The notes below the pieces were generated by a model. It was not told the DNA's origin, did not search any database, and was given only the letters and a program-made list of their open reading frames with translations. Shown one piece after another: positions 1-24,284 of a DNA stretch of 64,000 bases. Each line of letters opens with the position of its first letter. Within the stretch, counting starts at the first letter, position 1. This DNA is from Chlorokybus atmophyticus (Eukaryota; Plantae; Mesostigma and Chlorokybus algae): assembly GCA_009103225.1 (NCBI GenBank), contig RHPI01003578.1, positions 124,001-188,000 of the forward strand, given 5' to 3'. Both the position numbers and the translations under genes were made by a program.

Positions 1-2728
1 CGCTCGATTATGATTATGCATCACACAATGATTGTTGTCAACTGTGCAAAACGGTGATAAATAATACATGAATAACGCCAATGAATGCTACAACGTAAAC
101 TCCACTGAGCTACTACTACTACTACTATTGCTAGTACAACTCAGCTACTACTTCCCATACTAGTACCCTTGTATTAAGCTGCCGCTCTTGCACCGCCCAC
201 CACTGAAGCTGGCAAATCCGCCGCCGATGTTCCTCGCCCGCCGCCACTCCTGTAAAGCACACAAGGCAATTTTGCAAGCGCAATCAACAGAAACATACAC
301 ACCTACATGCTGTCGCTTGCCATGTATTGCCACCGCCGCCGCCGCCGCCGCCTAGCCTGGCCCGGCCGCCTAACGGTACAAAGGGTGGTTAGGCTGCCTG
401 CGCTGTTGCGCATAACACAACGTTATAACATACCGCAACCAAGCTCACCTACTGTTGGCCATTGCCGCCACCGCCGCCGCCACCGCCACCGCCGCTGCTG
501 CAGCGCAGCTAGCCTAGGGCTGAGCCCCTGCACAACACTCACAAGTCACTTGAGTTAGAAATCAACTTGACTTAAGCCGTTGAGCGTTTAGATTGCTACA
601 GCAGACACGATAGCACACAATCGTACCATCAAAACGGGACGATTGTACCATCATCACAATGGAAGCATTGTACAATGTCAATGGTACATTTAATGCATCG
701 TATAAGTCACGACTTGCCGGAAATGCGCAGCGACAAGTAGGAATTGCTGATCACTTGCTTGACGCTAAAAGATCGCTGCCGCGCATGATATGCTACGGTT
801 AGGTGATGACCGACAGTCAGCCGGCACCACAAGTCACTATAAGGCGACCTGCTTGCCACAACAGGCAGGCCTCTGCAACAGCCAGGCTACGATCGGTCGT
901 CACCGCAATGTCACGTGCTTGCCATTTTAAGCAAGCCACCGTTGCTTGTACTATCGACCGTCGATTGACCGTGAACAACAGTTCACAATAGCCGATCGCA
1001 AACCCAACAGTCCAAAAGCGACATGTCAGGCATGGTTAGGCATGGTTAGGCACCCATCAGTCCCTCAGTCCCTGGTCAATCATCGTGTAATTTGCCTTGA
1101 AAGGACTTGCGCTCAACTAGCTGCAAAACAAGTCAACGACACTAACATACCCTACTACCATGTCTCTACAACCTCTACAACCGTTTCAACCACTGTAACT
1201 GCCATAACTGCCTTACAACTCCCAAATCAGTCACACACACAACTAGCGGTTTTCAGTTACTGATATGTGGCACATGCGAATTCTACTAGCGTAGTTCAAA
1301 TACGCCTCAATGTGCTGACCGTAACTCTGCCGTAACTCACACAATATGACTCTAAAGCCTTTACAATCGATGTATTGCGCCACTAATACGCACGCGCATG
1401 ACACAGTCCTTCTGCAAGGACACAACAAAGTATTGCAATGCGTTTTTTCTTATATCAGTTTACATGTATGATAAGCGTAATTGCGCGTTAATGTGTGCGC
1501 TGCGTTTCCTCATTAATGTACATTGCTATTTGCAATTGCTCTATGGTTTACATTCATGTACACATACAACACTAAGTGGTAATTGATTATAATGGTGATG
1601 TGATGAATTATTAATAATATCGCTTATTTACATTATCATAAGAAGTGTTACATAATGGAGATAATAATTTCGTGACGATGTATACCATGGTTATGCAGCA
1701 GAATATACCAATCTCGACTATGACATAAAACGTGTAATGTTATAATTATTTACTATTGCAATCATGTGATATATTTGCTAACAAGGTAGTGCTATACGCA
1801 AAGACTTGTCACCGACATAAATGCATACTTGCAACATTGTAAACGTAATACATGTGTGAATTTCACTATGGAGTGGAGCGCGTACTATGATTGCTCCGAT
1901 GACCATAATTATAATTTGTTCAATTGTCATGAATATAAGACAAACCACATAGGTTGCATGTGTTCTTGCTTCTCATGTGCTTAAGAAGCCATCCATTCCT
2001 TGTATTGCACAACCCGTATATTGTAGCATGAACATGCAAATCCTTCTAATGATCTATATATAAGTATGGTTACAACATTTGATGTTCAAACAAATAGCAC
2101 TATCTCAAACATCTGCAATGTGCATGAATGTAGGAGGGAAAACCTTATTATGATCGTTCACATCCATGGAAACGATGCACCAACTCACCCCGAAGCGTAA
2201 GGTTAAAAAGTATGCAATGCGGTGCATGTGAACATGCAGTCATGTGCATATTGTAGCAGACAACTGAGACGCTTGAATACTCAGAACAACATCGACACCT
2301 AGACACCTGGACAAGGCTATGTAATATAACCATCAACATCAATGAACTACAACTACAAGGTGTTTTCATATGAAGACAGTAGACCACCTCATCCAAACCG
2401 TGCTCTTGTCAACGCAATGGATCAATTTAGCTTTCGGCATAATGCTTCACGGGAAGCAATAGTGAAGCAACCCCTGCACAGGTATTTGCAAAATTTGCAA
2501 ATCCGCAACAGGAAACCGCTTGCACACAACCCTCTCGCATTTTCTATACATGATAGCTGTCGCCTCCAAGCATCTTGTAAACAGCATTAAGTAGCAGACA
2601 TAGCTGCATGCTGCCATAAAGTGTCCGACTATAGGGTATGCACATTGGGCGCTACCGGCCGACACATACGACATGGTGTTTGGTTAGTGTTGCAAACTTA
2701 TAATGTACAGGCCGACGCAGTTGACGCA

Positions 2729-4670
2729 TTAGCCAGAGCTTGCGGAATTTGCAGGCAGGTACGGTGCCAAGGAGCGGGCAAGGTTCTGAAGAGCACGTGT
2801 CTGTGCGTAAACAGTGCCAGGGCCTGTGAACTTGGTGGCGAACCCCTCAGATGACAGAAAGCTGGAGGCCAAAGACCGAGAGCTCTTGCCAATCACATAC
2901 TGCATGCTGGCTGGCCAGGCCACCAAATAACCGTTGTCAATCTGCAAAAAACTCAAAAGAGTGTGACAAGCTCTGCATTTCATATCAACTCAAGGTGTCA
3001 TGCTGTTCGCACAAGCTATGACAGTTGGGCTCGGACACTGCCCACTGTCACCTACTGAGCATGCTTGCATGCATGTGTGCATCTGGGAGCTATCACTTGC
3101 ATGCTCACCTTGCGCGTCTCTCCAGGTGCCAGATCATATCGGACTATCGCGCCGTAACTTGCCACCACCAGGCGCCCGAGACCTTTTGCAGACATGATGA
3201 AGAACCCAGCGCCGGAGAACAGTCCTTTTGACAGGCTTTGCACACGTGTGTCAATGGTGATACCTGGGAAAACACAAGTCTCACTCTCAGCTGCCACCAA
3301 GCACATGTCGTATGCATGCAGCCAGCGCACTCACCCGCATCGCATGCAAGGAATGCACCCTTCTGCAAAAGCCACTCTTCACCCTACAAAATGCCACACA
3401 GGTAAGCACTATGCGTGTGCGCGCCTGTGCGCATTTGGGCGCGTATGATTATGTGTGCGAGCATGCATCTGTACGCGCGTGTGCGCCTGCGTACATGCAT
3501 GCATGTGTAAGCACGTGCGTATGTGCATGCTTGCCCAAGAGGAATCGAAGTGTACGCTGCATACAATGCACAATGCAGGACCCGCATTCCCTACCGCAAG
3601 GTGCAGGAGCATAGTGTTGCCGGGTGCAGCAGGCGCCAGCAATAGGTCACCACGTGAACTTGGTGGCGCTGTCGGGTGAAGCCGAAAGTACATAAAGAAC
3701 ATTGAACCACCGGCGCAGCACGATCTGCGCACAGAGTCAGACAATACCTTGGCAACAGCAAACGATGCTGCTGGCTTACCTCAAGCAAGCGGCACCGAAC
3801 CCGCCCTCCACCTTGGCAGCAAAGTCCACATGCTCGCTCATGCTTATCATTGCACCCGCCTCTGTCTTGACGGAGCACTCACCATCTGCATGGGTCACCT
3901 AGGAATGCACCCTTCGTTTTGTGCATGTCTGTGCATGCACAGACATGCACGTGCACTTGTGCTTATGCACCCAATTGCTGCAATGACTGCGCAACAAAAC
4001 GAAGAGCAAAGCTCATGCATGCAGTAGCTGCCCGAACATTATATGTGCCAAGCTGCTCACATACCTGGACTTCAACAGCAGCGAATTCGCCGTCAAACTT
4101 TACAGTATACTTGCCAGTGGGGTCGAAAGTATCTGCCCGCATGGCTCCTGTAATGATATTGCTCTAGTAAACTTAAACTCGTCGAGCAACACCATGGCCT
4201 TGGTGACCATGACCAGCGCTTCAAGCTGTTTGTCTTCTCTCAAAACACAAGTCATTTGATAACAACAGTAGCAACAAGTACAGAACTTAGCACCTGGTCC
4301 CACCTGAGCTTGTGGGCACACTCATCCCATTAGGCGTTGCAATGACCGGCTGGCCAGGAAGCACATTCTCATTCTGCAACGCACCAAGAATCCACAACGT
4401 CATTTCCCACAGCAAACCAACATCAACAGCGTCCCCNNNNNNNNNNNNNNNNNNNNNNNNNNNNNNNNNNNNNNNNNNNNNNNNNNNNNNNNNNNNNNNN
4501 NNNNNNNNNNNNNNNNNNNNNNNNNNNNNNNNNNNNNNNNNNNNNNNNNNNNNNNNNNNNNNNNNNNNNNNNNNNCCCCCCCCCGCACACACTCCACATC
4601 ACACACACACCAAAGCATGGGCGCAGTCGACACTCACCGCCTTCAACGGTTGGTACAATGCTGCCGACAT
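2729..4670 (-). CDS. AIM24: AIM24 / TIGR00266-family protein, multi-exon
   Basis: Exons joined at GT-AG sites give MSAALYQPLKA|NENVLPGQPVIATPNGMSVPTSSG|AMRADTFDPTGKYTVKFDGEFAAVEVQ ... VKTEAGAMISMSEHVDFAAKVEGGFGAACLR ... AGGSMFFMYF ... DLLLAPAAPGNTMLLHL ... GAFLACD ... IDTRVQSLSKGLFSGAGFFIMSAKGLGRLVVASYGAI ... IDNGYLVAW ... SSEGFATKFTGPGTVYAQTR, the typical three-repeat AIM24 pattern. The start exon is less certain because intron 1 spans the N gap. Confidence 0.88.
4437..4576. other. Assembly gap (run of N) inside AIM24 intron 1
   Basis: 140 Ns flanked by C-runs and CA-rich sequence. Confidence 0.98.
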
Positions 4671-6616
4671 CGTCCCCTCCTTCTCTCCTCTCCACCTCTT
4701 ACGTTAACCAGCAGCAGGGCGGACACGCAAGCAGCATCCAGCCTCAAGCACTTAGGCCGCCGCCGCCGCCGCCGCTACCGCTGCCGCTGCCGCTGCCGCC
4801 GGCGCAAGTCGTACAGCAGCTGACGAAGCTGCACGACTTCCTGGGGCTTCGTCTGCTGTTTGGTCGGGAGTGCAAGGGCATGCCGCGTGGCGGCGGCGGC
4901 GAGTGGTCACATGCTGGGTAGGAGCTGGTCAGGTGTACAGTCAGATGGCATGTATGGGATGCCTTAATGGTTGTTTGTGAGCTTGCAATGTTGCCCCTGC
5001 ACCCTGTGGGTGTCTTGCTGCCACGCAGGACACCTCAGTGGGTCTGTTATGCAGGTGATTTGCCATCATTACTGCATGAAGCAAATAACGCGATGGACGA
5101 CGGTGAGGCAATGCTTAACAGAAGCAATGAAGGCTTTACATGGCAGCTTGACTGAACGCGGATTGAACGGCCTCAAAGTTGGTTGTTTTGTGTCATAGGT
5201 GCACATTGCTGTGTAATGCCAAGTGTCTGCAAGTGCGGGTGTATGCTACAGTCTGCAGCGCATGTAATCAAAGGTTTTACGCATGGCTTACTTGTGTGGC
5301 GGCTAAAGTCGCCAGTCAAATGAAGACGCGTTCAGGTAAGAATAAAAGCTTAAAATCAGGCAAAAACTTGGTGAACAATTTGCGTGTCACAACTGTTGCA
5401 ACAACGGCTTCGCAAGCCGTTGTAGCAAGTCCTCAAGCGGTTTAATCTCTGCGCTAACCATCTGATGCTCCGTGCACAGCTGTAACACACATGCATATGG
5501 TATAAGATTGAAATTGATGAAGTGTATAGGCCAGCAAGCGTGGGCGCATGCATGCGCGCGCATGTGTGCACAGTTTCAAGACCGACCAGCACAAAATGTA
5601 AACACACTCGTGTGCATATGTGATGATGGGTTATGATGCTTGCATATCGGCGAAATACGTGCGTGTGTGTGCATGTGCAATCAAGCGCGCACGTGAAGTG
5701 CTAGCGCTCTCAACATGACGCTTTGTGTGCAGATGCATGACATGTGTATGAGCATATGTGCGTATGAGCTTCAGCGCATGAATTGCGTAACTTTGTTGCT
5801 TTAATGTACCGCCTCACCTCATGCGATAGCACACATGCTTAAAGGACGTCGTTGAAGCGTGTGGGCATTGTGCGCTGGGCTTAAGCCCTTAGCTATTAAG
5901 AGTTGATCAAGCAATTTTACAGTACAATAAAAATCTGCCGTTGATATACTTGCGCGTCACAATTTAAAGCTGCTGGAAAAGATTACATAGTAATACCAGT
6001 TCTTACCAGGTGGGAAGCTTTTTATGGCTCAGCAATCATTTATAAGTCACGTAAGCGCAATAATTACCCGGCACATAACTTGTGTTGCAAGGTAAAATAA
6101 GTACAAAATAGTCTTCCACAAAACCTTATGTGAAACATGCGTATTATCATGCAAATATCGCTAGTGTCGGATTTGTTGATGAGTGCAACATTGATAGCGG
6201 AAACTCGTAGTGCCGTGACTTCAAGTAATATACAAGACTCTCTTGCTTAAGTGCAACAATTCTTAAATCTTTACAGATTATGAGAAACAACGGGGGTAAC
6301 AGATTATGCGTTCGAGGGTGCATAAAAACTTCGATCACATCGAAACACATTTGTCATCATTTAATCTGCATCACGACCTTTCACCTTCGGTGCTATTTGC
6401 TTTATTGTTACCATTGTTCAATACCGTATACCTGTACTCATGTTAGGCATTACGGCTTGATAATGATACAGCGTATTTGCAAGCTTGCTGAGCTTAACAT
6501 TCGCTGGTATGCCGATAAGCCGGCATGCGTATAAGCAGCCCAAGCTTTCGCCAACGACCTGCAGGCCGCCCAGGACAAGGCTGACGGCAGCGGCCTTGTC
6601 CTGGGGAGAGCATGGC

Positions 6617-9018
6617 ATGGCGCCTTGTTCCCCACCTATGACAAGTATGCACCTTCCCAGGCGTGCCCTGGTCGTCCTGCTGCTGGTGCTGCTGCTTGTC
6701 CGCAACGATGGCGTCGCCGCCTTCCCCACAGGCGCCGGCAGCTGCCGATGGGGAGGCGTCATGCACGACGAGTACAGCGCCACTCCTGGGGACGGGGGCT
6801 ACTCCATCACGGTGGCAGGGGGCCGCCTGATTGCCGGCCGCGCCGCCGACGTCGTCGTGGAGGGTGCCGCCGCCTTCAAGGGCCTCCTGCTCTTCGCCGA
6901 GCAGGGCGGCAAGCCCTTGGGCAGCTGGGAGGGCCTGACGTTAAGCGGTGCGGACCACGACGACGACTTCCAGCTCAAGGACGACTGTCCCTGGGTTGCC
7001 ACCCATACCCACAAGCGCTCCAGGGTCAACCCCCGCAGCCGGGACGCCCTGCGCTGGGCTCCGCCGGGCGACCTCGTCGCCGGCGAGGAGGTCGTCTTCA
7101 AGGCCACAGTGCTCGTCTCCTACTCTCGCTTCCACAACATCCGTCTGGCCGTGCCCCTGGACGGCGGTGTGGCCAAGGAGGACCAACAGCAGCCCAAGCT
7201 GACCGACAAGCAGCCGAAAGCTGCTTTGGCAGAGGGAAAGCCTACTGTTGTGAAGGCTGCTTCAGCACCCTCATGTGGGAAGTCCGTTTTGGGCTATGCT
7301 TGCGCAGTTGCTGTAGATGGCGATGGGGGCGGCATTGCTTTCCACTGGTCCATTGATCAGGCTAGCCGCCAGGTGAGAGCACTTATACTGACATAATGCG
7401 ATATTTACTTCAACATACCGATACGCGTGCAGAGGTACACAGTTCAATGTAGAACAACTTTCCAGGCTATGGCGTAGGGTTCAGTCACAGCGTGTGTGTG
7501 CACATCCTCTTGTGCATGCACAGCTTGCCAGCTGTAAATGGCGATTATTTGAGCACAGTCTGCTTGATTAGTGCACTGGAGAGACATGTTGTCCACATAA
7601 CGCCTGCATACAGTATCTGACATGAAGCCTCATTGATGACGTGGTACGGTTTTGCAGTCCTCACCTCAGTGTTCCTGCATATCATCACGTCAGCATGCCT
7701 GCATATAATACGTCAGGGAATCAACATATACAAGCTTGTAGCAACATACACACCAACATGCACCCGGGCACAAATACAACACCAGTTTTTCAAGTACACT
7801 TTCAAGTATAGATCTTCAAGTACAGCAGCACTATGTGTCGCTTACTGTGTGCCAGGGCCCTAACTATGGAGTTATGGTACGCGCCAGGTTTTGTAAAGCT
7901 GCCGCGCATTGATCAAGTGTCTTGCATGGCAGTTGTCAGCAGCAGTCCAGGCGAAGACAAGTGGGTGGCTCGGGTTGTCCGTGGTGCGGGAGCCGCACGG
8001 GATGGTGCCGGCAGACGCCATCATCGGGTGGGCTACAACGGAAGGCGTCGCGCACATCAAGCCTTACCGGATTGAGGGTTTCAAGCGTACAGACGTCATC
8101 GAGGACACTTCTCAGAAATTGACGGAGGCAGGGGTGTCCGAGGAGGCCGTGCGGGGTGCGGGCACGATTACAACAATACAGTTCCGCCGTCCGCTGGCTT
8201 ACGGGGGCTCGCAGGGACCCATTCACGTGACCAAAGACACACACTTCAACTGGGCTGTGGGCTCAGCGGACGCGCTTGAGATACACGAGCGACGGGGTTC
8301 ATTCAGCATCAATCTTGGAGCTGCAATGAGCTCAGATGATCTTGCGTTGGTCAAGGAGGCAGAGCAGGAGGTGGGGCAGGGAGGGAAGACTCGTCTCAAT
8401 GTGCGCGCCATCAAGACGAGGAACCGCATCCTGCACGCGTGGGGCATGGGCATCGCGTGGCTGCTGCTCATGCCGGTGGGGACCCTCGCTGCCCGGCACC
8501 TGAAGGGCCGCGGAGGCGCCTTGTGGTTTGAGGCACACCGCGCTGTGCAAGTGGCCGGCGTGGTGTTGGCTTTGCTCGCGCTGCAGCGAGTGTGGTCGCT
8601 CAACAGCTCCTTGAATGCACCTTTGCGCCATGGCACTGTAAGTACTCGCCCCTGAAATGTTCTGCAAAGACTGACTGTTGTTCAAGAAACTCACTTTATG
8701 TTGTGGCAGATTGGCATCATAGCCATGCTGCTGCTGTCCTTCCAGCCAATGAACGCATGGCTAAGGCCCGATAAGTCTGCTGCGCGCCGACCTGCTTGGC
8801 GGCGATTGCATCATTTCACGGGCCGGGCGGCTCTTGTCCTTGGTGTCGTGAACGTGTACATTGGGTTGTGCGTCATTGACATCAAAGAGAAGGTGCGCAT
8901 CTACCCGTACGTGGTTTTGTTTGCTGCCACTGTCACTGCACTCGGCATCGCTGCCATAGCGCTGGAGTTGCGGCGAATCAGCTCGCACAAAAGGAAGTTG
9001 CCCTTGCGAACAGTATAA
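6617..9018 (+). CDS. Signal peptide + Reeler + DOMON + cytochrome b561 (FRRS1/SDR2-like ferric-chelate reductase), 3 exons (6617-7372, 7931-8637, 8711-9018)
   Basis: Signal peptide followed by Reeler motifs (FPTGAGSC, FKGLLLFA, ATHTHK, LRWAPP, VFKATVLVSY). DOMON motifs: IAFHW, SGWLGL, GMVPADAIIGW, EIHERRG. Four b561 His motifs: LHAWGM, WFEAHR, HGTIG, WRRLHHFTGR. Confidence 0.92.
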
Positions 9019-12952: not shown

Positions 12953-13013
12953 ATGGCTGGGAACATCCAGCTGGAGGACCTGGGCAGCAGGGGCGCCTAC
13001 GTCCCGCTGCCTG

Positions 13014-13044
<31 letters not shown>

Positions 13045-16000
13045 AGGAGGAGGAGGCTTCTCGGATGACGACGAGGAGCCCGGCTCGTCCGCCGGCCCGA
13101 CCGCCGACCTCCTGCGCGAGGAGGCGGGTGGTGGCGCCTGGGATGACGCCCCACAGGCCAATCTAGACCGCTTCTTCGCCAGGGTGTACCAATTCTACCA
13201 GGAGAAAGGGTTCACATGTGCAATTACATCCAGGTTGGTGTTTAAGGCTTTTCCTGTGTGTTTTGTAACTTTTCATGTGACATTGCAAGTAAGACCTGTT
13301 TGAACAATAAACTCAGCTGTATGTATGACAGCTGCACCTTGGATTAGGGTTTGTACTGTCATGTATGTCATCTTGAAGTTATGGCTAACCAGGTGTCTGT
13401 AAGACTTGGTCTAGCAACTGCTACACTGGTTTGGAATTTGGTAATTGCATGAAGCTGTGTACACTGTGTAATGCGAGAGGTGCACATATAAGTCAAACTC
13501 ACACCTGTGCAAGCGGCTTTGGAAGGTACTCTACGAGATAGCAATTGCGTAGTTGTTGCATTCTCCTTGTTATTACAGTGCCAAGGGTTACGCCATAGGG
13601 TTGATTCAAGTACGTGCTCAGCTGTGGTGTCTTTTGAGTGGACATCAGTTGCAGCGCTAGTGACTGTATATTATGTTGAGTATGCACCAAGGTGAGTTGC
13701 ATACGTTGTGCAGCACAATTGCGAGTGCACCGTAGCTGCTAACAGTAAATACAGATCAATTACACGATGAAGGTGTTTACGCTAAACGTAATTGACTCAA
13801 CTGCCAACAGTCTTATGTTCTTTTATGCATTGGCACTGCAGTTGTACTCAGTAGTCAAGAAGCTGGTGCGTTCTATCTCATGCAGGGTGCTGAACCTCAT
13901 CGCTCTGGCATTCACTGCATGGCTGAGCTTGGCGCTGCTGCTGCTTATCAACTGGAGCGCATTGCTGTCACATTGCCGCGTGTCCACGGAGACCTCTGCC
14001 GAGTCGGTGGTGGCGCCATGCCCGCTGCTGGAAGACCGTCACACGGGCGCGCCGCTGTACTACTCCTCGCCTTTCGCTCCCGAGGCCCCGCCGCTCACGC
14101 CGTGGCGGATGATTGTGATACTCTATCTCAATGCTGTTGGGTTGTTTTGGCTTTGGAGCTTCTTTAGACTTGTGTTGGATATCCGCCCGCTGATGGAGAT
14201 GTCGTGGTTCTATCGACGGCGGCTTGGCATCTGCGAGGGTGAGCTGCAGGCGGGGATTGCGTGGGCGCGTGTTGTGGAGAGGGTTGTCGAGTCCCAACGG
14301 AGACGACGGTTATGCGTGATACGTGAGCTCACTGCGCATGACATTGTTGGTCGCATTATGCGCAAGGAGAACTACCTCATTGCCATGCTCAACAAAGACG
14401 CGCTCCCCCTTGGCCTCCCCGGCCGGCGTGTGATGCTGACAAAAACCCTCGAATGGAACTTGTATTGGTGTATACTTGACGCCATGTTTGACGACAACTT
14501 TCTGCTGCGCGAGTCGTTCATCCATGACGAGGCTGGCTTGATGAGGAGATTGCGCGTAATGGGCATGCTGAACCTCATCCTCTCCCCTTTCCTGTTGGCC
14601 TCCATGTTGATATACTTCTTCCTTCGCAATGCCGAGCGCTTCTATCACCATCCCGGAAGTGTGGGCGCGCGAAGGTGGTCTGCGCACGCAGAGTGGAGGC
14701 TACGCGAGTTTAATGAGGTTCCGCACTCTTTTCGCCGCCGCCTCGCACGTGCACACCCCGCGGCCCAACACTACGTGGCGCAGTTTGCGTCCCCCTTTGC
14801 ATCAATGGTCGCCAGTTTCATCGCCTTTGTTGTTGGCGCCCTCGCGGCCGTCTTGCTCGCCCTCGCCCTCGCCGAAGAGACCCTTCTCGAGGCGGAGTTG
14901 CTGGGTCGCAACCTCGTGTGGTTTGGCGCTATCTTCGGCACCGTCCTCGCCATCAGCCGCTCTCTTGTTATAGAAGAAACCACTGCTGCACCCGAACCCG
15001 AGGCGGCCCTTCGTGCATTGGCTGTACACACACACCACTACCCAAGGCGGTGGCGGGGCAACGCTCACGCGCCAAAGGTCCGTGCCGACGTGGAGGCGAT
15101 GTTTCAGTACGGCTTTGTGATGTTTCTGCAGGAGCTTTGCTCCATTGTGCTCACGCCGTACGTGCTCCTCTTCTCCCTTCCACGCGGCGCGGGCGGGATC
15201 CTGCGCTTTGTCCGTGACTTCACCACGCACGTGGACGGCGTTGGCCACGTGTGCTCTCTCGCTGCTTTTCAACTTGATAAGCATGGCAATCGCCGCTATG
15301 GCGCACCCACAAGTGCCCCGAAGGTGCGCAGAAGCTCCCACGGCAAGCTTGAGAAGTCTCTCATTAGTTTCAAGAGCCAGTACCCGACGTGGGATCCGCC
15401 TACTGAAGCAGGGAGACAGCTCATACACAACCTGTCTGAATTCAGAGCACGCACAGAGCAGAGTTTGCACGCCACGCCCGCAGCTAGCAGTATGTTGTAC
15501 CCTCCTTATGCATATAGCACGCTCCGACCACCTGTACATTTCCCCCACGCATCCAACGCGTCGCACGCGCACGCCAACAACTCGCCAATCTGGGCCGCCC
15601 ACGGCCCGTTCTTCCAGCACCGACCAGCTCCCGCCGAAGCACACCACGCAGATGTTGGGTCTCTCATGCGCTCTCGCCTTGCATTGGACTCGCACCCTGC
15701 TCTGGACTTTGCCGCCCGCGTCGATGAAGAGCAGCAAAGCCAGCTCCTGTGGCTGGATGAGTATCACGAGAGTGTACATGCTGCTGATGTTGAGGCCGAA
15801 GCCAGGGATGTCCATATTGTTGTGCCTGAAGGCACCAATAGCCAAGACCAGTTCTCCGAGTCTCAGCAGGTACGTCATTGCGTGTGTGGTTGGTGAGTTG
15901 ATCTTTGTAGGAAAGCATAGTGGTACACTCGTCTTCACGCCAACACACAGAGACACCACCTTGCAAAGTTCTTGTACGCTGTTGTCATGTGCAACAATAT

Positions 16001-16123
16001 TGATCAATGCACTCTGTTGGGTGTTTGGGATCACGTCTCAATTGTGTTGCATGTTGTAACTCATCCTTGTGCTTGCAGCGAAGAGTTCAGTCGCACGAGA
16101 GGCATATTGAACAGAGCCATTGA
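12953..16123 (+). CDS. ATG9: Autophagy-related protein 9 (exons 12953-13233, 13886-15869, probable short last exon 16079-16123)
   Basis: NLDRFFARVYQFYQEKG, DIVGRIMRKENYLIAM, LTKTLEWNL, WRLREFNEVPHSFRRRL, VGHVCSLAAF and HGKLEKSLISFKSQYPTW are conserved ATG9 motifs. The last exon is tentative. Confidence 0.96.
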
Positions 16124-17555
16124 TGCACCGCGTGTTGTGAAGCCAGTAGTAGTTTCATGCACTTCTCCTGTGGCACATTCTTTGCAATCCTGGTAAGCAC
16201 TCCTGGGTCTGCGCATTGTCAAGTCATGTAGACTGATTTCGGCCCTTTGTGAATGTTGGCAGGAACTGCTCCACGGATTGCGCCTGTGAATTGTTTGTGT
16301 AGAGCACCTTCAGGTCTGTTGTTTGTAGATACGTATGGGGTTTCCCCTAGTTTGGTTCCTACATCTAGATTAACTGTAAGCACTTTGTGTTTAGCTTGTA
16401 CAGGATTGCACGCACGCGGCGGTTTGGCCGGCATAAGTCCCCTGCATTGTTAGACCATTGCTTCAATTTCCTTGTTGCAAGAGCTCAGTGTCTGGTGTGT
16501 GCTTTTGTATTGTTCCATGCAAGTTGACTTCACGCCAAGAGCTGCGATGCAAGTACGACCCTCCCGTATTGGCAACAGAGGACAAGTGCAGCTGTGCATC
16601 TTGCACAGCAACAATGTAGCCGTAGTGGCTGCATAGCTTGTGCAATGGGGCACAGGTCGGTGCGCAAGTCATGTAAGCCCTGGCACACATTGATGCAGCG
16701 CAGCTCCAATCACATGAAGGTGGCTGAGGCCATCAAGGAAGGTGTAGTTTGGTGAGTTACCTTTTCAGTATCATCTGCGTGCAGCAATAGTAGTACCTGT
16801 TGCCGCCGGCGTCCCGCCTCCTACTCCCGTTCATGGCGTTGGCCGTTGGCGCGCGCTTCAGCACGCTCGCTACAACAGGACTTAAGCGGTGGTCGACGAG
16901 GCACTGGCGGCGCATGAGCGAGGTACATCGGCGAAGGAGCGCGCACAGAGGGTGTACATCAGCAGCAGGGACTGGAGCGGGCCGGGGGCGTGAATGTCAT
17001 CGCCACTATACCCCTGAGTGCAGCTATTGAGCGATCTTTTGTACGGTGCGGACGCTCGTGGGTCTGCTACACTCCTCCTAGCATGGGTACAGCACTGTGT
17101 ATGTGGAGCGGCGCTGACACCCGATGGCGGGCACTGTTGCGATCTGCGGTAGGGCGTGTACGTGTTGCCACGCCTGATGGTGTGCAAGACGAGATGTTCG
17201 CCAGCATGCCAGAGGCCACATTGGCTGTCACTCGGAAGCAGTCCGAAGTCATGCCGTTGCGCCCGCAAGAGGCTTGTGGCCGATGACTAGAGCTGGTGGC
17301 CAAGCAACCAGGCTGATGTTTGGTGTCGCAATGCTTGCAGCGACTGAGCGGGTGCAGTGGCGTGCTCGGCGGAGCTGGGGAAGCACCAGAATTGCAGCTG
17401 AGTAACGGCCTCGCCCGCGGCGTGACACATTGTAATTGCTAGCAGCAGCACACAAACACTGCTTACATTACACCAAAACACGAGCACACACAAAAACAGC
17501 GTCCATGCCTACCATGTAGTGTAGAACAACTACACTACACTACACTACCGGGCTC

Positions 17556-19430
17556 TCACGCCCCCGCTGCCATGGCCACATCCGCCTCCGCCATTGGTGG
17601 CATCACCTGAATCGGGCTCCGGCGAGCGCGGCACGGCCGCCGCTCCACGCTCCAGCAGCGCCAGCCCTTGCGCTCGCTGCAGGGCGCAGGCCACCCTCTG
17701 GCGCAACAAGGCCACGCCTCCCAGACGGCGCAGTGGCAGCCCACGTGCGTACACCGTCTGCCTGGCGTACTTCGTGAGGAGGGCGCTCCAGGCGGCGCCC
17801 AGAGTCCCGTGCAACAGCAGAGACAAATGGCTGCTTGGGTGAGGAGTTCCGCCATGTGCTGCAGCTGCGTGGCGCATGGTGGCAGCGCGGTATGCGGAAC
17901 AGCAGCGCACGGGCGGCTTGACTCATGTGGTTCTGCTGGCAGAGCGTGGCTTGTGCGCAGCACCACCAACAACTCTCTAGCACAGCATATGTACAAGGTT
18001 CGGCTATGAGCTCTGTCACCATACCTAGCACAACACACAAGCACATACAGACTCACAGTACACATGTCATCGCTGCATTGTCCCGCGCGGATCACCTCAT
18101 GCCGCTGTTGTCAGCGTGACGTCCGCTTCCATGGTAAGCGGTGCTGCCATCAATGGCGCCCACCCCAGCATGGCCACCACCGCCGCTGCTCACCGCTCCA
18201 TCATCGCCCACGCGCCGGCGCAAGTTGAAGTGCACACGCCACACGCTGTCAAACTAGAGTGACGACGCCGCTGAGCCGGCGCAGTGGCAGCCCCTGACAA
18301 ACACCGCTCTTCTTGCGCACGGGTTGAGGACGTTGTGGAGGCCCTCACCCAATGTACCATGGGTCTCCGTCGCCAATGGCAAGAAGCGCAGCGGGCATAG
18401 TCGTTCAATGCTCTCCGATGCTGGAGCGCGGTACGGCGGCCGTGCCGGGCTGGGCCCAAGTACCAACACGACCTTCTGAAATCGAGTTGGATGCAGCACT
18501 CACGGCAGCAGGTGTGGCGTTGTGAATGTGTGAGTGTTTGAGTGCAGGGAGGCGTGGTTGATGCGCGATGAAGTGCGTGTGCGTGCCTTACAGTTGGTGG
18601 GAATGCGTATACAAGTGTGTACAAAAACCTAGCATTAGTTAAGCATGCACCACTCCGCCTCACGCACACTCACCATGTTTTGCACTCCACCATGCTCCAC
18701 AACCCCACATACTGACTTCAGGTGAAGACATGCCTGCCACCAACGGGCTACAACACCTTCTACTACTTTTCACCCTACCACCCGCCCTACTGTGCTACAA
18801 CAGCGTGTGTATAGGATATGTGAAGTGCTGTGTTGGTGTATGTCGTGGGTGAGTGTTGAGACTAACGTGATTGTGGATCAAGCACATATATATGTGAACA
18901 TGTACATGCAATAGTGGTTTCTGCTTGCATGTATGTGCTATCCAAGTGGTTCTGATGCAAAGAGCACGCACACACTAGGCATCAGCAAACATAACAAGCA
19001 CCCAAGCTAGCAAAAGAATCAAGACATGGGCAAGGGCAGAACCTAGCTAAGTGCAGTGTCTTAAGTGCGTGCAAAGGGCGAGGGTGGGGGCGGGTGAGCA
19101 GGCAGGGCAGGGCAAGCAAGGTAGCAGCTGGTCAAACACCACCTGTGGTCACGCAGTGACAGGTGTCAGGCTGGTAGGACGCAGCGTGATAGGACCCAAG
19201 ACACGCAACAGCAGCAGCAGCAGCAGCAACAGGGCGGAGGTAGTGCTTGGTGTGTTGTGCTGTGCCATGTATTGAGCCACAGCCACAGTGGTAGGGGCAG
19301 CACCATGCGAACACACAAACACTGCAAAGTAGAGGTTTGCTTGAGCTGGGGGCGGGGGCTGCCTTTGCAACACATTGTTTGGGAACAAAATTGTGCACAG
19401 AAGCTCAAAGGCACTGTCGCGCAACATGTC
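17556..19430 (-). CDS. Unresolved GC-rich coding-like interval; possible diverged p31comet/MAD2L1BP homolog
   Basis: FQKVVLVLGPSPARP (about 18440-18484, minus strand) resembles the plant COMET motif QKVVLILGGSPLRP as recalled, and AFELLCTILF (about 19390-19420) weakly resembles FTCELLKHIMY. No complete gene model could be built. Confidence 0.25.
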
Positions 19431-20261
19431 TAGCTGTATACGAGCCTACCAACCACGCAAAGGAATGGTACCACGACCAAAGCATGAGGCGCTGCACACA
19501 GGATCTTAGCCCTGCCTAGAGCCTGCCATCCGCAACTTCCCCCCTGCGCACAACCGCCAGGTGCCAATCAGTTCACGGCATGGTCGTGTGACTGGTAATA
19601 TCTGGCAACATGAGCACATGAGCTACACAGCATAGACACACCGCATGACTCAACACATGAAAGTGGAAAGCACCTTCAGCAACCGTGGTGATGTTATACC
19701 CCGATGCCAAGCTCGTTGGCCAAACAAACCACAACCAGCAACACACGTCAGGTTCGCATGGCAGTAGCAGGTTGACGACCGTGTGCTGGCATCGTCGCAG
19801 TGACCCGACACTGAACAAGGACAAGACACGACATTGTCGAGGAGCATAGTGGAATGGAAGCTGCCACACTGAATTGTTGCCAGCACACAATCGAGCCGGT
19901 AATGCGCCAAAAATACCTTTCCAAGAGCAAGCTAACCTTACCAGTTGTCAGTCTTGTCAGAGTCGTCACAGTTGAGGCTAAAGACTGAGATGCCGAAAGC
20001 AGTTGTCTTGTCAACACCTGCAGCAGAGCTTGTTGTCACTTGCAGTGTGAAAAAGCTCTCTTTTGTCGCGGTCTCCAAGGCACGCCATGCAAACGTGCAA
20101 CATGTCATGTCAAAACGGCCACAGTACAGTAAGCAAGCGTGTCGCAACCATCCGCACAGGACCGAGGAGGGGGGATGTGGTACACACAAAAAGGGGAAGC
20201 CAATCGTCCACCATAGCTGTTGTTGTTGTTGACTCTGAAGGTGATCTTGACGGGGGCGGCG

Positions 20262-21350
20262 ATGCCGTTAGCCATGGAGGAGGCGGCGGCAAGGAAGGCG
20301 TCTGTACGCTCGTATCTGTACGCATTGGTGCTGTCGTTGGCATGGGGAGTGGCATTGGCATGGCCCTTGGCGACACATCTGGCCTCCTCAGCCGCTGCAT
20401 GGAGGAGTATCATCCATGCATCCACTATCTCTGATGCACCAATGATGCCGACCACCACCACCACCACTCCAAGAACATTCCTGTGGACGAGGTGGACAAG
20501 ACAGCCGCCACCTGCTCCGGAGGAAGCTGTTGATGACGAAGAGTGCACCGCCGCTGTGGTCAGCAATGTCGCCCTCCTCAGCCATCACCTGGTCGGCGTT
20601 GTCCTCCTCTTCATCCTCGTCCAAGGTGCTGCCGCGGCCGCCACAGGCCCTCTTATCCACGTCATTACCAAGAAGGTCTTCCCGTACATTGCCACCTCTG
20701 CTGCCACCGCTGCTGCCAGGGTGAAGGCCGCCAGACAGGCAGCGAAACCACGTGGGCAAGTCCTGGTGAAGGTGTCTGGCGGCGCTGGCGGGGTGCGCCT
20801 CCGCCACGTGTGGAGAGCAGAGGTCTCCCTGTTTGTCCTGCGGGAGCTCGCTGGCGGCGTCGGCGTTGCAAAGGTCAAATGGCGGGAGCCTGTGGAAGGA
20901 GAGTGGCTTGAGCTTGCCACGGAGGACGACGTGGCCCATGCCCTGGCGGCTGTGCAGAGCCAATACACCAACAACAGCAGCAACAGGAGAGCATCCGTCT
21001 GCCTGCGTATCCACGTTAGCAACCCCAACATGGTTGGTGACATCGACAACCAGAGCGTGGCTGCGGAGTCTGTGGATGGTGCGGGTCTTAGCCTTGATGT
21101 TGACGGCCACACCAACTCGAACAACGACACGGATGCCAAGCACTTTGATGCAAAGATGCACCGCCTGCAAGAAATGGTGAGACTGTGCACTGTACTTGCA
21201 TGCTCGCACTCATGTGATTGTAACAACATGCATTAGCAGGGGTTTCATGACCGTGAGCTCAACGAGCAGCTGCTGGCACGCTTCCAAGGCGACATCAAGC
21301 GCGTGGTGGCCGCTCGCGAGCTTGAAACGGGTGTTCTTACGCCAGACTGA
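20262..21350 (+). CDS. Membrane-anchored PB1-UBA protein, 2 exons (20262-21176, 21240-21350)
   Basis: Two hydrophobic segments (YLYALVLSLAWGVALAWPLA; LVGVVLLFILVQGAAAAA), then a PB1-like region (VLVKVSGG ... KVKWREPVEGEWLELATEDDVAHAL). Splicing restores the UBA signature RLQEM|GFHDRELNEQLLARFQGDIKRVVAA. Confidence 0.75.
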
Positions 21351-21740
21351 TGTGTAAGCACGCAGCTGGCTGCATTGCACACTTGCACCAACCCTCCTGC
21401 ATCAAGCCAATAACAACAAGCATGCAGGCAAGCCATACTGTTGATCGCGCAACACTGGAGAGGAGCTTCCTGCTTGTAAGCCATTGCGCCATATCAGAAG
21501 TCTTGTGAAGGCTATACCTGCAAACTGCGCAAGCACACTGTACATATATAGATTTTGTGCAAGTTGAAGCACACAACATGCTGTGCAAGTAGCCAAGTAG
21601 ACAATCTGTTGACATTGTCTTTCATAACTGAATCTGTACAGTTTCAGCCAATGGACCTGTAGAAGCTGTGTACTGCAACATGCCACGATTGGTACTGGGG
21701 TATGGTTGTATGCACACAATACCAACTTGTTTCTGTCTCA

Positions 21741-24284
21741 CTACGGCCTCAACTCCCTCCCAAACAGTGCTGCAGCATTGCGCGCGCTTGAATGCAGGAC
21801 TATTTCAGCATCCACATCGCCGGCGTAGCCCTCCGCCACCTTCTCCGCGATGTACACCAGCATGGCCGGTTCATTCAGCTTTGGGCGCGGGCGAGGGGCG
21901 TTGCGGGGTATGAGGAAGGGGCTGTCGGTGTTAAGTACAAGTCGGTTCAATGGGATGGACGGGAGAAGCTGCAGCAGTTGCTTGTTGCGACGCTCGTCGC
22001 AGATCAGTCCCGTCACGCCAATGTACAGGCCCAAGGACAAGTATGCATTGAGGTCGGATGCGTTGCCTGTGAAACAATGGATGAGGGCGCTGTTCTTGAT
22101 CTGGAAAACAAACAGGAGTGAGGGTGCTTGAAACATGTTGACAACACATAAGCTGGATATGGTTGTCATCATTACCTGCTCAGCGTAGGGAGTCAAAGCC
22201 TTTATCATGCTCTCAGCCGCATTGCGCTCGTGTAGGTACAGAGGCAAGCCCAGGCGCAGGGCCAGCTTAACCTACAAGCCGCACTATCACATAAGACAAA
22301 ACATGCACAACTTAGCTGCTCACAACAAGTCAAACCATTGCAAGCGTACCTGTTCATGAAGCCAATGCAATTGAGCGTCACGGGGCGTGAAGTTGCGCTC
22401 AAAATCGAGCCCGCATTCTCCTAGCGCCACCACCACATCGGGGTTCCCTGACGCCAGATGCTCCAGCCTGGGAAGCGTGCTAGCATCGCACTCACCCACC
22501 CTGCAACACCATTGCATATAAATGCATAATCAACCCATTCCTTCATGCATGAAGCGCACGTGCCTCAATTTTACATGTGTGGATGCACGCCCACCGTGCA
22601 CGTGACCTTCGGCAAGCTCTCATCCGCTGTTCACAAGCACGCATGCACACTCTTTAACTCATACCCTTCCACAGACAAACCAGTCAACAGTTAATACCTC
22701 TTTCACGCAATCTTTGCGCAAGGGCCACCCCGCGCGTACTGGACGGCACGTCATAGCAGTTAACGACCACCTCACGCACGCCGGCGCCCGCGGCACGCGC
22801 GAGGAGGATGTCGGGAGAGGGGACGCCTTCGCGGGCAAGCTTCTCATGGACCAGGCTGGCGCCCGCGTCAAAGGACGGGACAGAGGCGTAGCGGTTGGTC
22901 GGAGGGAGGATGCTTACGGGAGAGGCTGAGGTGGCTCTGCGTGTAATGCGGTCAATTTCATCCTGGCGCCGCTGTTTATGGCGGGACGGGAGAGTGTCCA
23001 ACGAGGCTGTGGGTGCGAACCATGCACCCTTGTTCAGTAGGTGCAGGCATAGCGCGGCAGTGTTGCGAGCATCGTCCAGGCCGCTATGGTGCCGCCCCTC
23101 AAAGGCCAGGCCGGACTCCTGCAGTTTAGTGGCATTGTTGAGGGTCAAGCCCACAGCTTTCCCAAACATGCTAATGCATGCACTTGCTGCACAACACCTT
23201 AAGCATGTGGAGAAGGCCTGCAGGCGCGTGACGGGACTTGTTGTTCACGCGTCTGTAAATCTCCTTCACGTCGCACCATCGAGTCAACGAAGCGGGGGGC
23301 TGCACTTGGGACAGCGCACACTGTGCAGCACAACAACAACTATCAGCAACCATGCAGCAAGCTACTATGGCAGAAGTGCACATGTACCACCTGAAGGGGG
23401 AGCATGCGTGCGCAGTCCCAGTTGCCGCACGTGACAACCAGCACCTCCTTCTTCTCCTTCACCTTTTTATTATCAGTCTCCTCCTCTGGTTCGAGCATCC
23501 ACTGGTCCAGGAAGGCCTCGAACTGCGCGAGGACGGTGGGGAAGGTGTCAGCGGCGTCTACATCCTCCTGGCGGATGCCTGTGAGGCGTCGGCAGAAGTC
23601 CGTGAGGCGCGGCCGCAGCACCGGACACACGTAGCGCCTGAACTCATGCACCGGCGCACGCCTAGCCCCCGCGTCCACAATCACGGCAGGGAACTCTATT
23701 ATCTCCTGCACAGGCGCAATGCAGGCTAGTGCTTGAGTGCAGTAAGGCATAATGTCAGTCACTTCAGTGTACTGGAACTGTTTCAGTGCTAGGCACTAAA
23801 AGCAGGAGGTGCACACACCTGAGGGCCAAAGTTCTCGCTTTTCTCATCGCATGTGGCCTCAAAGTCTATGACGCATAGCCACCTTGCGCCCTGCAGTGCA
23901 CAAATGTTAGCACGTGCAGTAATCATGCTCTGTGTCAGTTGTACATTCATATATACCGTCTGCTATGCAACAGCTGAGTTTTTCTCTGCTAAGCAATACA
24001 AGTAGCTGCTAACAAAGAGCACGTTAAGTAATCTAACGGGTCAATGTCACGTATTATCCAAGCTGGTGGCAACACCCAGCAGCCTGAATGGTTTGCTGCT
24101 GTGCATGCAAGTGCACCTTGGTGGTCAGCTGCTGTTCCGGTGCAGCTGCATGCAGAGAGCGACTGCTGGACGACGCCACCTTGACGGCAGATCTGCAGAC
24201 AACAATCTTGGCAGGCGATGTCAACAACAACGAACGCACCGTCGCCACCGACGCTGGCGCCAACCCCGCCGCCAAGCAGGGCAT
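21741..24284 (-). CDS. Transit peptide + ERI1-type DEDDh 3'-5' exoribonuclease fused to a TatD nuclease, 9 exons, 585 aa
   Basis: Exons 24284-24117, 23890-23819, 23705-23391, 23320-23198, 23118-22698, 22626-22575, 22500-22350, 22271-22176 and 22100-21741 join in phase (total 1758 nt). ERI1 motifs: VIDFEATC, EIIEFP, LTDFCRRLTGI, TCGNWD, FEGRHHSGLDDARN. TatD motifs: FDAGASL, TVGVHPH, LGECGLDF, LHERNA, IHCFTG, NTDSPFL, RNEP-like KLNEPA. Confidence 0.9.

Follow-up and report, generated by a model that had tools for sequence, protein, structure and literature searches.

A predicted membrane-anchored PB1-UBA protein of NBR1 descent in the streptophyte alga Chlorokybus atmophyticus

Gene structure and descent from NBR1

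The window, by which we mean the whole 64-kb stretch of DNA that was analysed, carries a two-exon gene on its plus strand at positions 20262-21350 (Table 1). It comes from Chlorokybus, an early-diverging streptophyte alga. About 4.4 kb upstream and on the same strand lies an exon of ATG9 (PF04109, E 1.2e-133; 13767-15893), in agreement with the distance of some 4 kb given in the initial annotation of this DNA, and a TatD-type exon is found just downstream on the minus strand. The layout originally proposed for the gene itself, with an ATG at 20262, an intron at 21177-21239 and a TGA at 21348-21350, proved correct throughout. The sole database protein that matches the region is the eukprot entry jgi/Chlat1 Chrsp135S02137 (280 aa, 100% identical), which uses exactly the splice that had been proposed and on which the presence of a UBA domain depends, and which starts at Met62 (20445) instead of at 20262. 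This entry is the spliced protein analysed here, while the scan for AIM cores described below was done per exon.

The reading frame is intact across 341 codons. The intron carries an in-frame TAG, and GT..AG splicing restores the frame of the UBA. Methionine codons occur in exon 1 at residues 1, 5, 61, 62, 257, 299 and 305 only, which bears on the choice of start discussed below. A crude codon-usage score, trained on just two long exons of the window and for that reason weak as evidence, takes positive values in the frame of the gene in all exon segments, the stretch from Met1 to Met61 included, whereas the intron and the flanks on either side score below zero. Just 5' of the first ATG there is an in-frame mini-ORF of 13 codons, from the ATG at 20175 to the TAG at 20214, and after it comes a (TTG)5 microsatellite at 20218-20232; the mini-ORF or the microsatellite could influence start-site choice if it lies within the 5' UTR. 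At the other end of the gene, TGTAA pentamers are present at 21353-21357 and 21475-21479, 3 nt and about 125 nt past the stop codon. This pentamer is the poly(A) signal in Chlamydomonas and may or may not serve as such in Chlorokybus.

Table 1. Features of the gene, with positions in the window
Feature	Position	Strand	Basis or remark
Exon 1, coding part	20262..21176	+	305 codons from the first in-frame ATG; upstream in-frame TAG at 20214-20216
Hydrophobic segment 1, residues 18-37	20313..20372	+	Kyte-Doolittle maximum 1.81; outside the public model
Start codon of the public model, Met62 of the ORF	20445..20447	+	Chrsp135S02137
Hydrophobic segment 2, residues 97-135, predicted anchor	20550..20666	+	Kyte-Doolittle maximum 2.28
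Basic juxtamembrane flank, 7 Lys/Arg and 0 Asp/Glu	20667..20756	+	Composition, 30 residues
Divergent, very probable PB1, residues 166-254	20757..21023	+	Profile, hhalign, language model, MAFFT, AlphaFold
Lys of PB1 beta1 (VKV)	20766-20774	+	Alignment to NBR1 PB1s
PB1 OPCA acidic motif, partly kept	20880-20933	+	Alignment to NBR1 PB1s
Linker, acidic, Asn-rich, zero aromatic residues	21024..21143	+	Translation, composition
FDAK, relic of the plant NBR1 AIM (WDP[IL])	21144..21155	+	Alignment; fails [WFY]xx[LIV]
UBA helix 1, closing exon 1 with the Met of the MGF loop	21156..21176	+	Pfam, BLASTP, alignment to NBR1 UBA2
Intron	21177..21239	+	63 nt, GT..AG (GTGAG...CAG), phase 0, splitting Met from Gly in the MGF loop of the UBA
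Exon 2, coding part	21240..21350	+	36 codons; remainder of the NBR1-type UBA, 13-residue tail and TGA at 21348-21350

The C-terminus of the protein is a UBA of the NBR1 type, as had been noted from its motifs. Taken alone, the last 56 residues reach 27.6 bits against the Pfam family UBA_NBR1_C (PF24932), for which the cut-off is 27; the same profile gives 23.6 bits on the whole protein and a weak 15.6 bits on exon 2 alone. By BLASTP the domain is 54% identical over 39 aa to UBA2 of NBR1 from the orchid Vanilla (E 2e-14), and in a domain-by-domain scoring its best matches are the C-terminal UBAs of plant NBR1s, at 27-29 bits. In keeping with the MGF/MGY loop and three-helix pattern of UBA domains, alignment shows that this UBA has its MGF loop in common with NBR1 UBA2, together with the L, N, L, G, R and V columns that do not vary, and weak matches among PDB sequences are to ubiquilin UBA domains and to the UBA of human NBR1. 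In Arabidopsis NBR1, it is the C-terminal UBA alone that binds ubiquitin (PMC7864022). The Chlorokybus UBA may bind it too.

The link to NBR1 goes further than the domain resemblance described in the initial annotation. In the Vanilla NBR1 gene, a GT..AG intron (22460-22544 of its locus) falls between the Met and the Gly of LQEMGF, and an intron of 99 nt occupies the same site, between EM and GF, in the rice NBR1 gene. The region coding for the first UBA has no such intron in either gene, and a PB1-UBA gene of Balamuthia is intronless. The position and phase 0 of the Chlorokybus intron are identical to those in Vanilla and rice, and this common intron means that the terminal exon and the intron were inherited from a streptophyte NBR1 gene. 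The gene thus descends from NBR1, a point on which the gene structure is decisive, and the shared intron provides a clean evolutionary anchor for the history of NBR1 reduction that is set out below.

Is the gene nevertheless a decaying remnant? It could be a non-functional NBR1 fragment or an over-predicted gene, that is, a partial duplicate that stays open by chance and whose hydrophobic N-terminus has no meaning. It is known from one genome only, with no orthologue among the proteins searched; its PB1 has diverged past recognition by Pfam and its AIM is degraded, as described in the next section; and its product contains low-complexity runs (six Thr; Ala-rich stretches) and an N-terminal part of 165 aa that has no recognisable features and for which a language-model search returned no usable match. 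Against decay stand a frame of this length in which the splice sites rejoin the two parts of the UBA, a UBA that keeps its MGF loop and most of the invariant residues of NBR1 UBA2, and a coding score whose sign follows the exon boundaries. We consider decay or over-prediction improbable, though a serious rival, and treat the gene in what follows as an intact derivative of NBR1.

A divergent, very probable PB1 and a degraded AIM position

The region between the hydrophobic N-terminal part and the linker is very probably a PB1 domain, in line with the PB1-like domain and acidic cluster originally described, although it is not recognised by Pfam: PF00564 gives no match on exon 1, on the whole model or on the isolated middle region. 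Nor was a PB1 found when this middle region was compared with PDB sequences by phmmer, and BLASTP against the N-terminus of Vanilla NBR1 gave nothing meaningful. The lone phmmer match among PDB sequences, a catalase-peroxidase, was judged to be due to chance.

Four further comparisons point to PB1. A profile HMM that we built from 75 NBR1-type PB1 domains and ran with its filters off assigns the region 6.8 bits. With the trimmed model, this score was never reached when the residues were shuffled 5000 times; with the untrimmed model, two of 5000 shuffles reach the score of the region. Using hhalign against a small and a larger alignment of NBR1 PB1s, the part comprising OPCA, alpha2 and beta5 was aligned with P 0.0011-0.0025 (about 0.001-0.0025). 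Among protein-language-model neighbours of residues 100-205 of Chrsp135S02137, the top three are PB1 clusters, at 0.86-0.87, which by the calibration of that score is a lead only. A MAFFT alignment with NBR1 PB1s covers the full length of the domain, pairing VLVKV with VVIKV, which contains the beta1 Lys, and LRIHV with LRINV in beta5. In the OPCA region it sets WREPVEGEWLEL..EDD against YTDEDGDIVAL..D[DE][DE] of NBR1, so that the OPCA Gly and acidic residues are conserved (E-PVEG-E...EDD versus DEDGD...D[DE][DE]).

Structure prediction gives a compatible picture. Whereas AlphaFold run on the whole model from its sequence alone gave no useful result (pLDDT 42.8), a prediction guided by the PB1 alignment has the order beta-beta-alpha-beta-beta-alpha-beta (pLDDT 61, pTM 0.48), which is that of the ubiquitin-like beta-grasp of PB1 domains; the alignment presupposes a PB1, and the prediction is in that respect not independent. 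When this alignment-guided model was submitted to Foldseek, the best 40 PDB matches were all PB1 domains, including those of human NBR1 (TM 0.72 on target) and AtNBR1. The beta-grasp is thus a prediction, while the assignment to PB1 has good support from the comparisons as a whole.

By alignment, both PB1 interaction surfaces are present, the beta1 Lys that characterises type B and, in part, the OPCA acidic motif of type A. The tandem Arg, RR or KR in NBR1 PB1s, is half kept and reads V-R here; in p62 and AtNBR1 this tandem Arg stabilises filaments (PMC9582228). Compared with NBR1 PB1s, the domain lacks 9 residues after alpha1 and has 12 extra residues before beta5. It is preceded by 165 residues and so does not sit at the extreme N-terminus. 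A PB1 by itself does not predict self-interaction (PMC9582228), and this one is too diverged for a capacity to polymerise to be read from its sequence.

Only about 45 residues separate the PB1 from the UBA, which is the single UBA of the protein, UBA1 being absent. Neither exon 1 nor Chrsp135S02137 has a Pfam match to ZZ (PF00569), or, at E<=10, to the FW family N_BRCA1_IG (PF16158), which bears out the original statement that both domains are missing. The FW domain is the feature that separates NBR1 from p62 (PMC9582228).

In plant NBR1s the AIM directly precedes UBA2. The LIR/AIM of Arabidopsis NBR1 is WDPI661-664 (PMC11587852), and the monocot sequences that we compared have EWDP[LI]L. The corresponding block of columns in Chlorokybus is HFDAKM, in which the aromatic residue and the Asp are retained and a Lys occupies the hydrophobic +3 position; the FDAK relic therefore falls outside the [WFY]xx[LIV] core. 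A regular-expression scan for this core in both exons found no canonical AIM outside the folded and hydrophobic parts of the protein. Five cores are present in all: YALV, WRSI and FILV lie in or border the hydrophobic segments, FPYI belongs to the basic flank and has no acidic context, and WLEL, the only core flanked by acidic residues, sits in a PB1 strand.

Hydrophobic segments and the rarity of the architecture

Hydropathy was assessed in 19-residue Kyte-Doolittle windows, for which the classical threshold is 1.6. Only two places exceed this value, residues 18-37 and residues 97-135, and both are moderately hydrophobic and contain His, Gln, Gly and Ala. The two hydrophobic helices of the initial annotation are thus recovered as hydrophobic stretches, but the first of them lies 5' of the public start codon. 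Its translation requires a start at Met1 or Met5, in which case it could act as a signal peptide or form a first TM helix. The second does not depend on this choice: there is no Met between segment 2 and the PB1, which means that any PB1-containing product includes segment 2, barring an unannotated upstream exon.

Residues 48-96, which precede segment 2, are acidic (4 basic and 7 acidic residues), and segment 2 is followed by the basic flank. The positive-inside rule is established knowledge for membrane proteins, and under this rule a flank with seven positive and no negative residues would place the PB1-UBA part in the cytosol with either start. Hydropathy and flank charge together make an anchored PB1-UBA protein that faces the cytosol likely, with membrane insertion and topology both standing as predictions from sequence.

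The product might instead be a soluble PB1-UBA protein, if the hydrophobic stretch were a cleaved presequence or were skipped by way of an unannotated upstream exon. The 5' end is a predicted one, and all PB1 and UBA relatives that we found, plant NBR1 included, are soluble, with Kyte-Doolittle maxima below 1.5. For a cleavable signal, however, a hydrophobic stretch of 39 residues is long, and the ORF runs continuously from segment 2 into the PB1 with no internal Met at which a shorter product could start. A soluble product is in our view improbable, though a serious rival, and an anchored one is assumed below.

How unusual is this combination of domains? An exhaustive phmmer search with residues 95-280 of Chrsp135S02137 against 1.84 billion representative proteins returned 16 matches at E<=0.001, all of them through the UBA. 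They include true NBR1s (Vanilla, with PB1-ZZ-FW-UBAx2), FW-UBA and PB1-FW-UBA fragments, and amoebozoan PB1-(UBA)n proteins. Among the 1.84 billion representatives the search found neither an orthologue nor another protein that joins a hydrophobic anchor to PB1 and UBA, and the predicted architecture singled out by the initial annotation was in this set seen in the Chlorokybus gene only. Word-index searches of 5.8 billion proteins, made with exon 1 and with residues 100-280 while avoiding low-complexity words, found the protein itself and nothing else, and tblastn of Chrsp135S02137 against the window revealed no paralogue within the 64 kb. In the literature we found no description of a TM-PB1-UBA protein and nothing on a Chlorokybus NBR1.

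Partial PB1 and UBA combinations in protists have been mentioned by Mutte and Weijers (PMC7051960), and the amoebozoan PB1-(UBA)n proteins found here fit these. Together with metagenomic sequences, they form a set (Balamuthia KAL6055225.1, Dracoamoeba, metagenomes) in which a PB1 or PB1-like head is followed by 2-7 tandem NBR1-type UBA units with the signature GF..R..N..LL.RF.GD...V. The set looks like an uncharacterised soluble family: the annotation of KAL6055225.1 goes no further than hypothetical protein, and no functional name is attached to the others. In Balamuthia mandrillaris (JAVKOQ020000213.1, region 1-7740), the PB1-(UBA)n gene at 3001-4740 lies between a gene for a ubiquitin-activating E1 and a gene for a double-AAA ATPase, and its flanks are thus ubiquitin-system genes.

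Relation to known receptors and possible function

Plant NBR1 (AtNBR1/Joka2, and the Vanilla and rice proteins) is the system to which the Chlorokybus protein can be compared most directly. Like it, plant NBR1 has an N-terminal PB1 with a beta1 Lys and an OPCA-like acidic motif, a UBA2 with the phase-0 intron in the MGF loop and the percentage of identity given above, and an AIM position directly before UBA2. Plant NBR1 differs in having ZZ, a four-Trp FW, UBA1 and an intact AIM, all of which are missing or, in the case of the AIM, reduced to FDAK in the alga, whereas the alga has an N-terminal hydrophobic extension and plant NBR1 has no segment above 1.5 on the Kyte-Doolittle scale.

The same reduced layout, in which a PB1 and one UBA occupy opposite ends and the FW domain is gone, is seen in metazoan p62/SQSTM1, which itself arose as a reduction of an NBR1 ancestor in which FW was lost (PMC9582228). 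In contrast to the Chlorokybus protein, p62/SQSTM1 has kept ZZ, a functional LIR, a KIR and the tandem Arg used in filaments, and it is a soluble protein restricted to metazoans. The algal protein derives from a streptophyte NBR1 independently of p62, in a parallel reduction. The amoebozoan PB1-(UBA)n proteins (Balamuthia KAL6055225.1, Dracoamoeba and metagenomic sequences), the top matches of the exhaustive search, also consist of a PB1 followed by NBR1-type UBA units (MGF..N..LL.RF.GD...V) and have no ZZ or FW. They resemble the Chlorokybus protein in the UBA only, however, carry four to seven UBA repeats in this comparison, and differ from it in having no hydrophobic segment and, in Balamuthia, no intron.

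A functional analogy is offered by UBXD8/FAF2, yeast Ubx2 and UBAC2, UBA proteins of ER quality control that are held at the membrane by a hydrophobic hairpin or a TM segment. They are the closest parallel to a membrane-resident ubiquitin catcher, but they are built with UBX/UAS or rhomboid-like modules, have no PB1 and share no sequence relationship with the Chlorokybus protein. NBR1 and p62 are the classic examples of soluble autophagy receptors that depend on ubiquitin. Membrane-bound autophagy receptors, to our knowledge, form a separate class whose members contain neither PB1 nor UBA. They combine a transmembrane anchor with a cytosolic AIM/LIR; of these, the Chlorokybus protein has an anchor predicted from hydropathy and no canonical AIM.

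The reading that we favour, with modest confidence, is that the gene represents a lineage-specific derivative of a streptophyte NBR1, composed of PB1 and UBA2, whose product acts as a putatively membrane-anchored and ubiquitin-binding scaffold. Such a derivative would have retained the PB1 and the last UBA of NBR1, the latter with its ancestral intron, would have lost ZZ, FW and UBA1 and let its AIM degrade, and would have gained an N-terminal extension of unrecognised sequence with one or two hydrophobic helices. Residues 97-135 would then anchor the protein, leaving PB1, linker and UBA in the cytosol. The UBA may capture ubiquitinated proteins at that membrane, and the PB1, which still has its beta1 Lys and some of the acidic OPCA face, may associate with further copies of itself or with other PB1 proteins, by docking or as oligomers. 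A link to ATG8, if there is one, would have to be indirect or non-canonical.

The protein could also be a bona fide membrane-bound selective-autophagy receptor, which co-polymerises with a canonical NBR1 or binds ATG8 in a non-canonical manner and delivers ubiquitinated membrane or organelle cargo to autophagosomes. Such a role is suggested by the NBR1 ancestry, by a type-AB-like PB1 that has both the Lys and acidic residues, by the Phe and Asp kept at the ancestral AIM position, and by the presence of ATG9 4.4 kb upstream. However, the AIM core is broken and the sole acid-flanked core in the protein lies in a PB1 strand, the protein has lost FW and ZZ as cargo modules, and no canonical Chlorokybus NBR1 is among the database matches, from which its absence from the genome does not follow. 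As for ATG9, gene neighbourhood in a single eukaryotic genome is no evidence of function. We consider a genuine receptor of this kind unlikely. The membrane-bound autophagy or ubiquitin receptor that the initial annotation had envisaged is thus supported in part. Its domain calls hold and an NBR1 ancestry is added to them, but the protein has no canonical AIM, the first of its two proposed helices precedes the public start codon, and V-R stands where the tandem Arg would be.

A bolder and equally doubtful extension of the favoured reading is that the NBR1 lineage of Chlorokybus gave rise to the first membrane-integral sequestosome-like receptor. Here, a p62-like PB1-UBA protein on an organelle or ER membrane would, through oligomerisation and ubiquitin binding, nucleate ubiquitin condensates or recruit the autophagy or quality-control machinery. 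If the favoured scaffold is real, it would be a natural fusion of the two receptor principles, soluble and membrane-bound, and would imply that a PB1-UBA module is able to function as a lasting part of a membrane. NBR1 would then also have been pared down to a p62-like core a second time and independently, in an algal parallel to p62 of metazoans. The practical weight is limited, as a single alga is known to have the gene, and its expression, membrane localisation, ubiquitin binding and function are all predictions.

The proximity of ATG9 was considered as a functional clue and set aside: it concerns one genome, about 4 kb of unannotatable sequence separate the two genes, and comparative support is lacking. 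It is most simply a coincidence. The ATG9 gene itself looks complete (12953-16100 on the plus strand, with a main exon of 2.1 kb), and a GT that follows 15869 points to one or more additional 3' exons. Between it and the PB1-UBA gene, at 16100-20200, lie roughly 4 kb of G+C-rich DNA with several minus-strand ORFs of 90-180 codons and no Pfam match, which may hold an unannotated gene or repeats.
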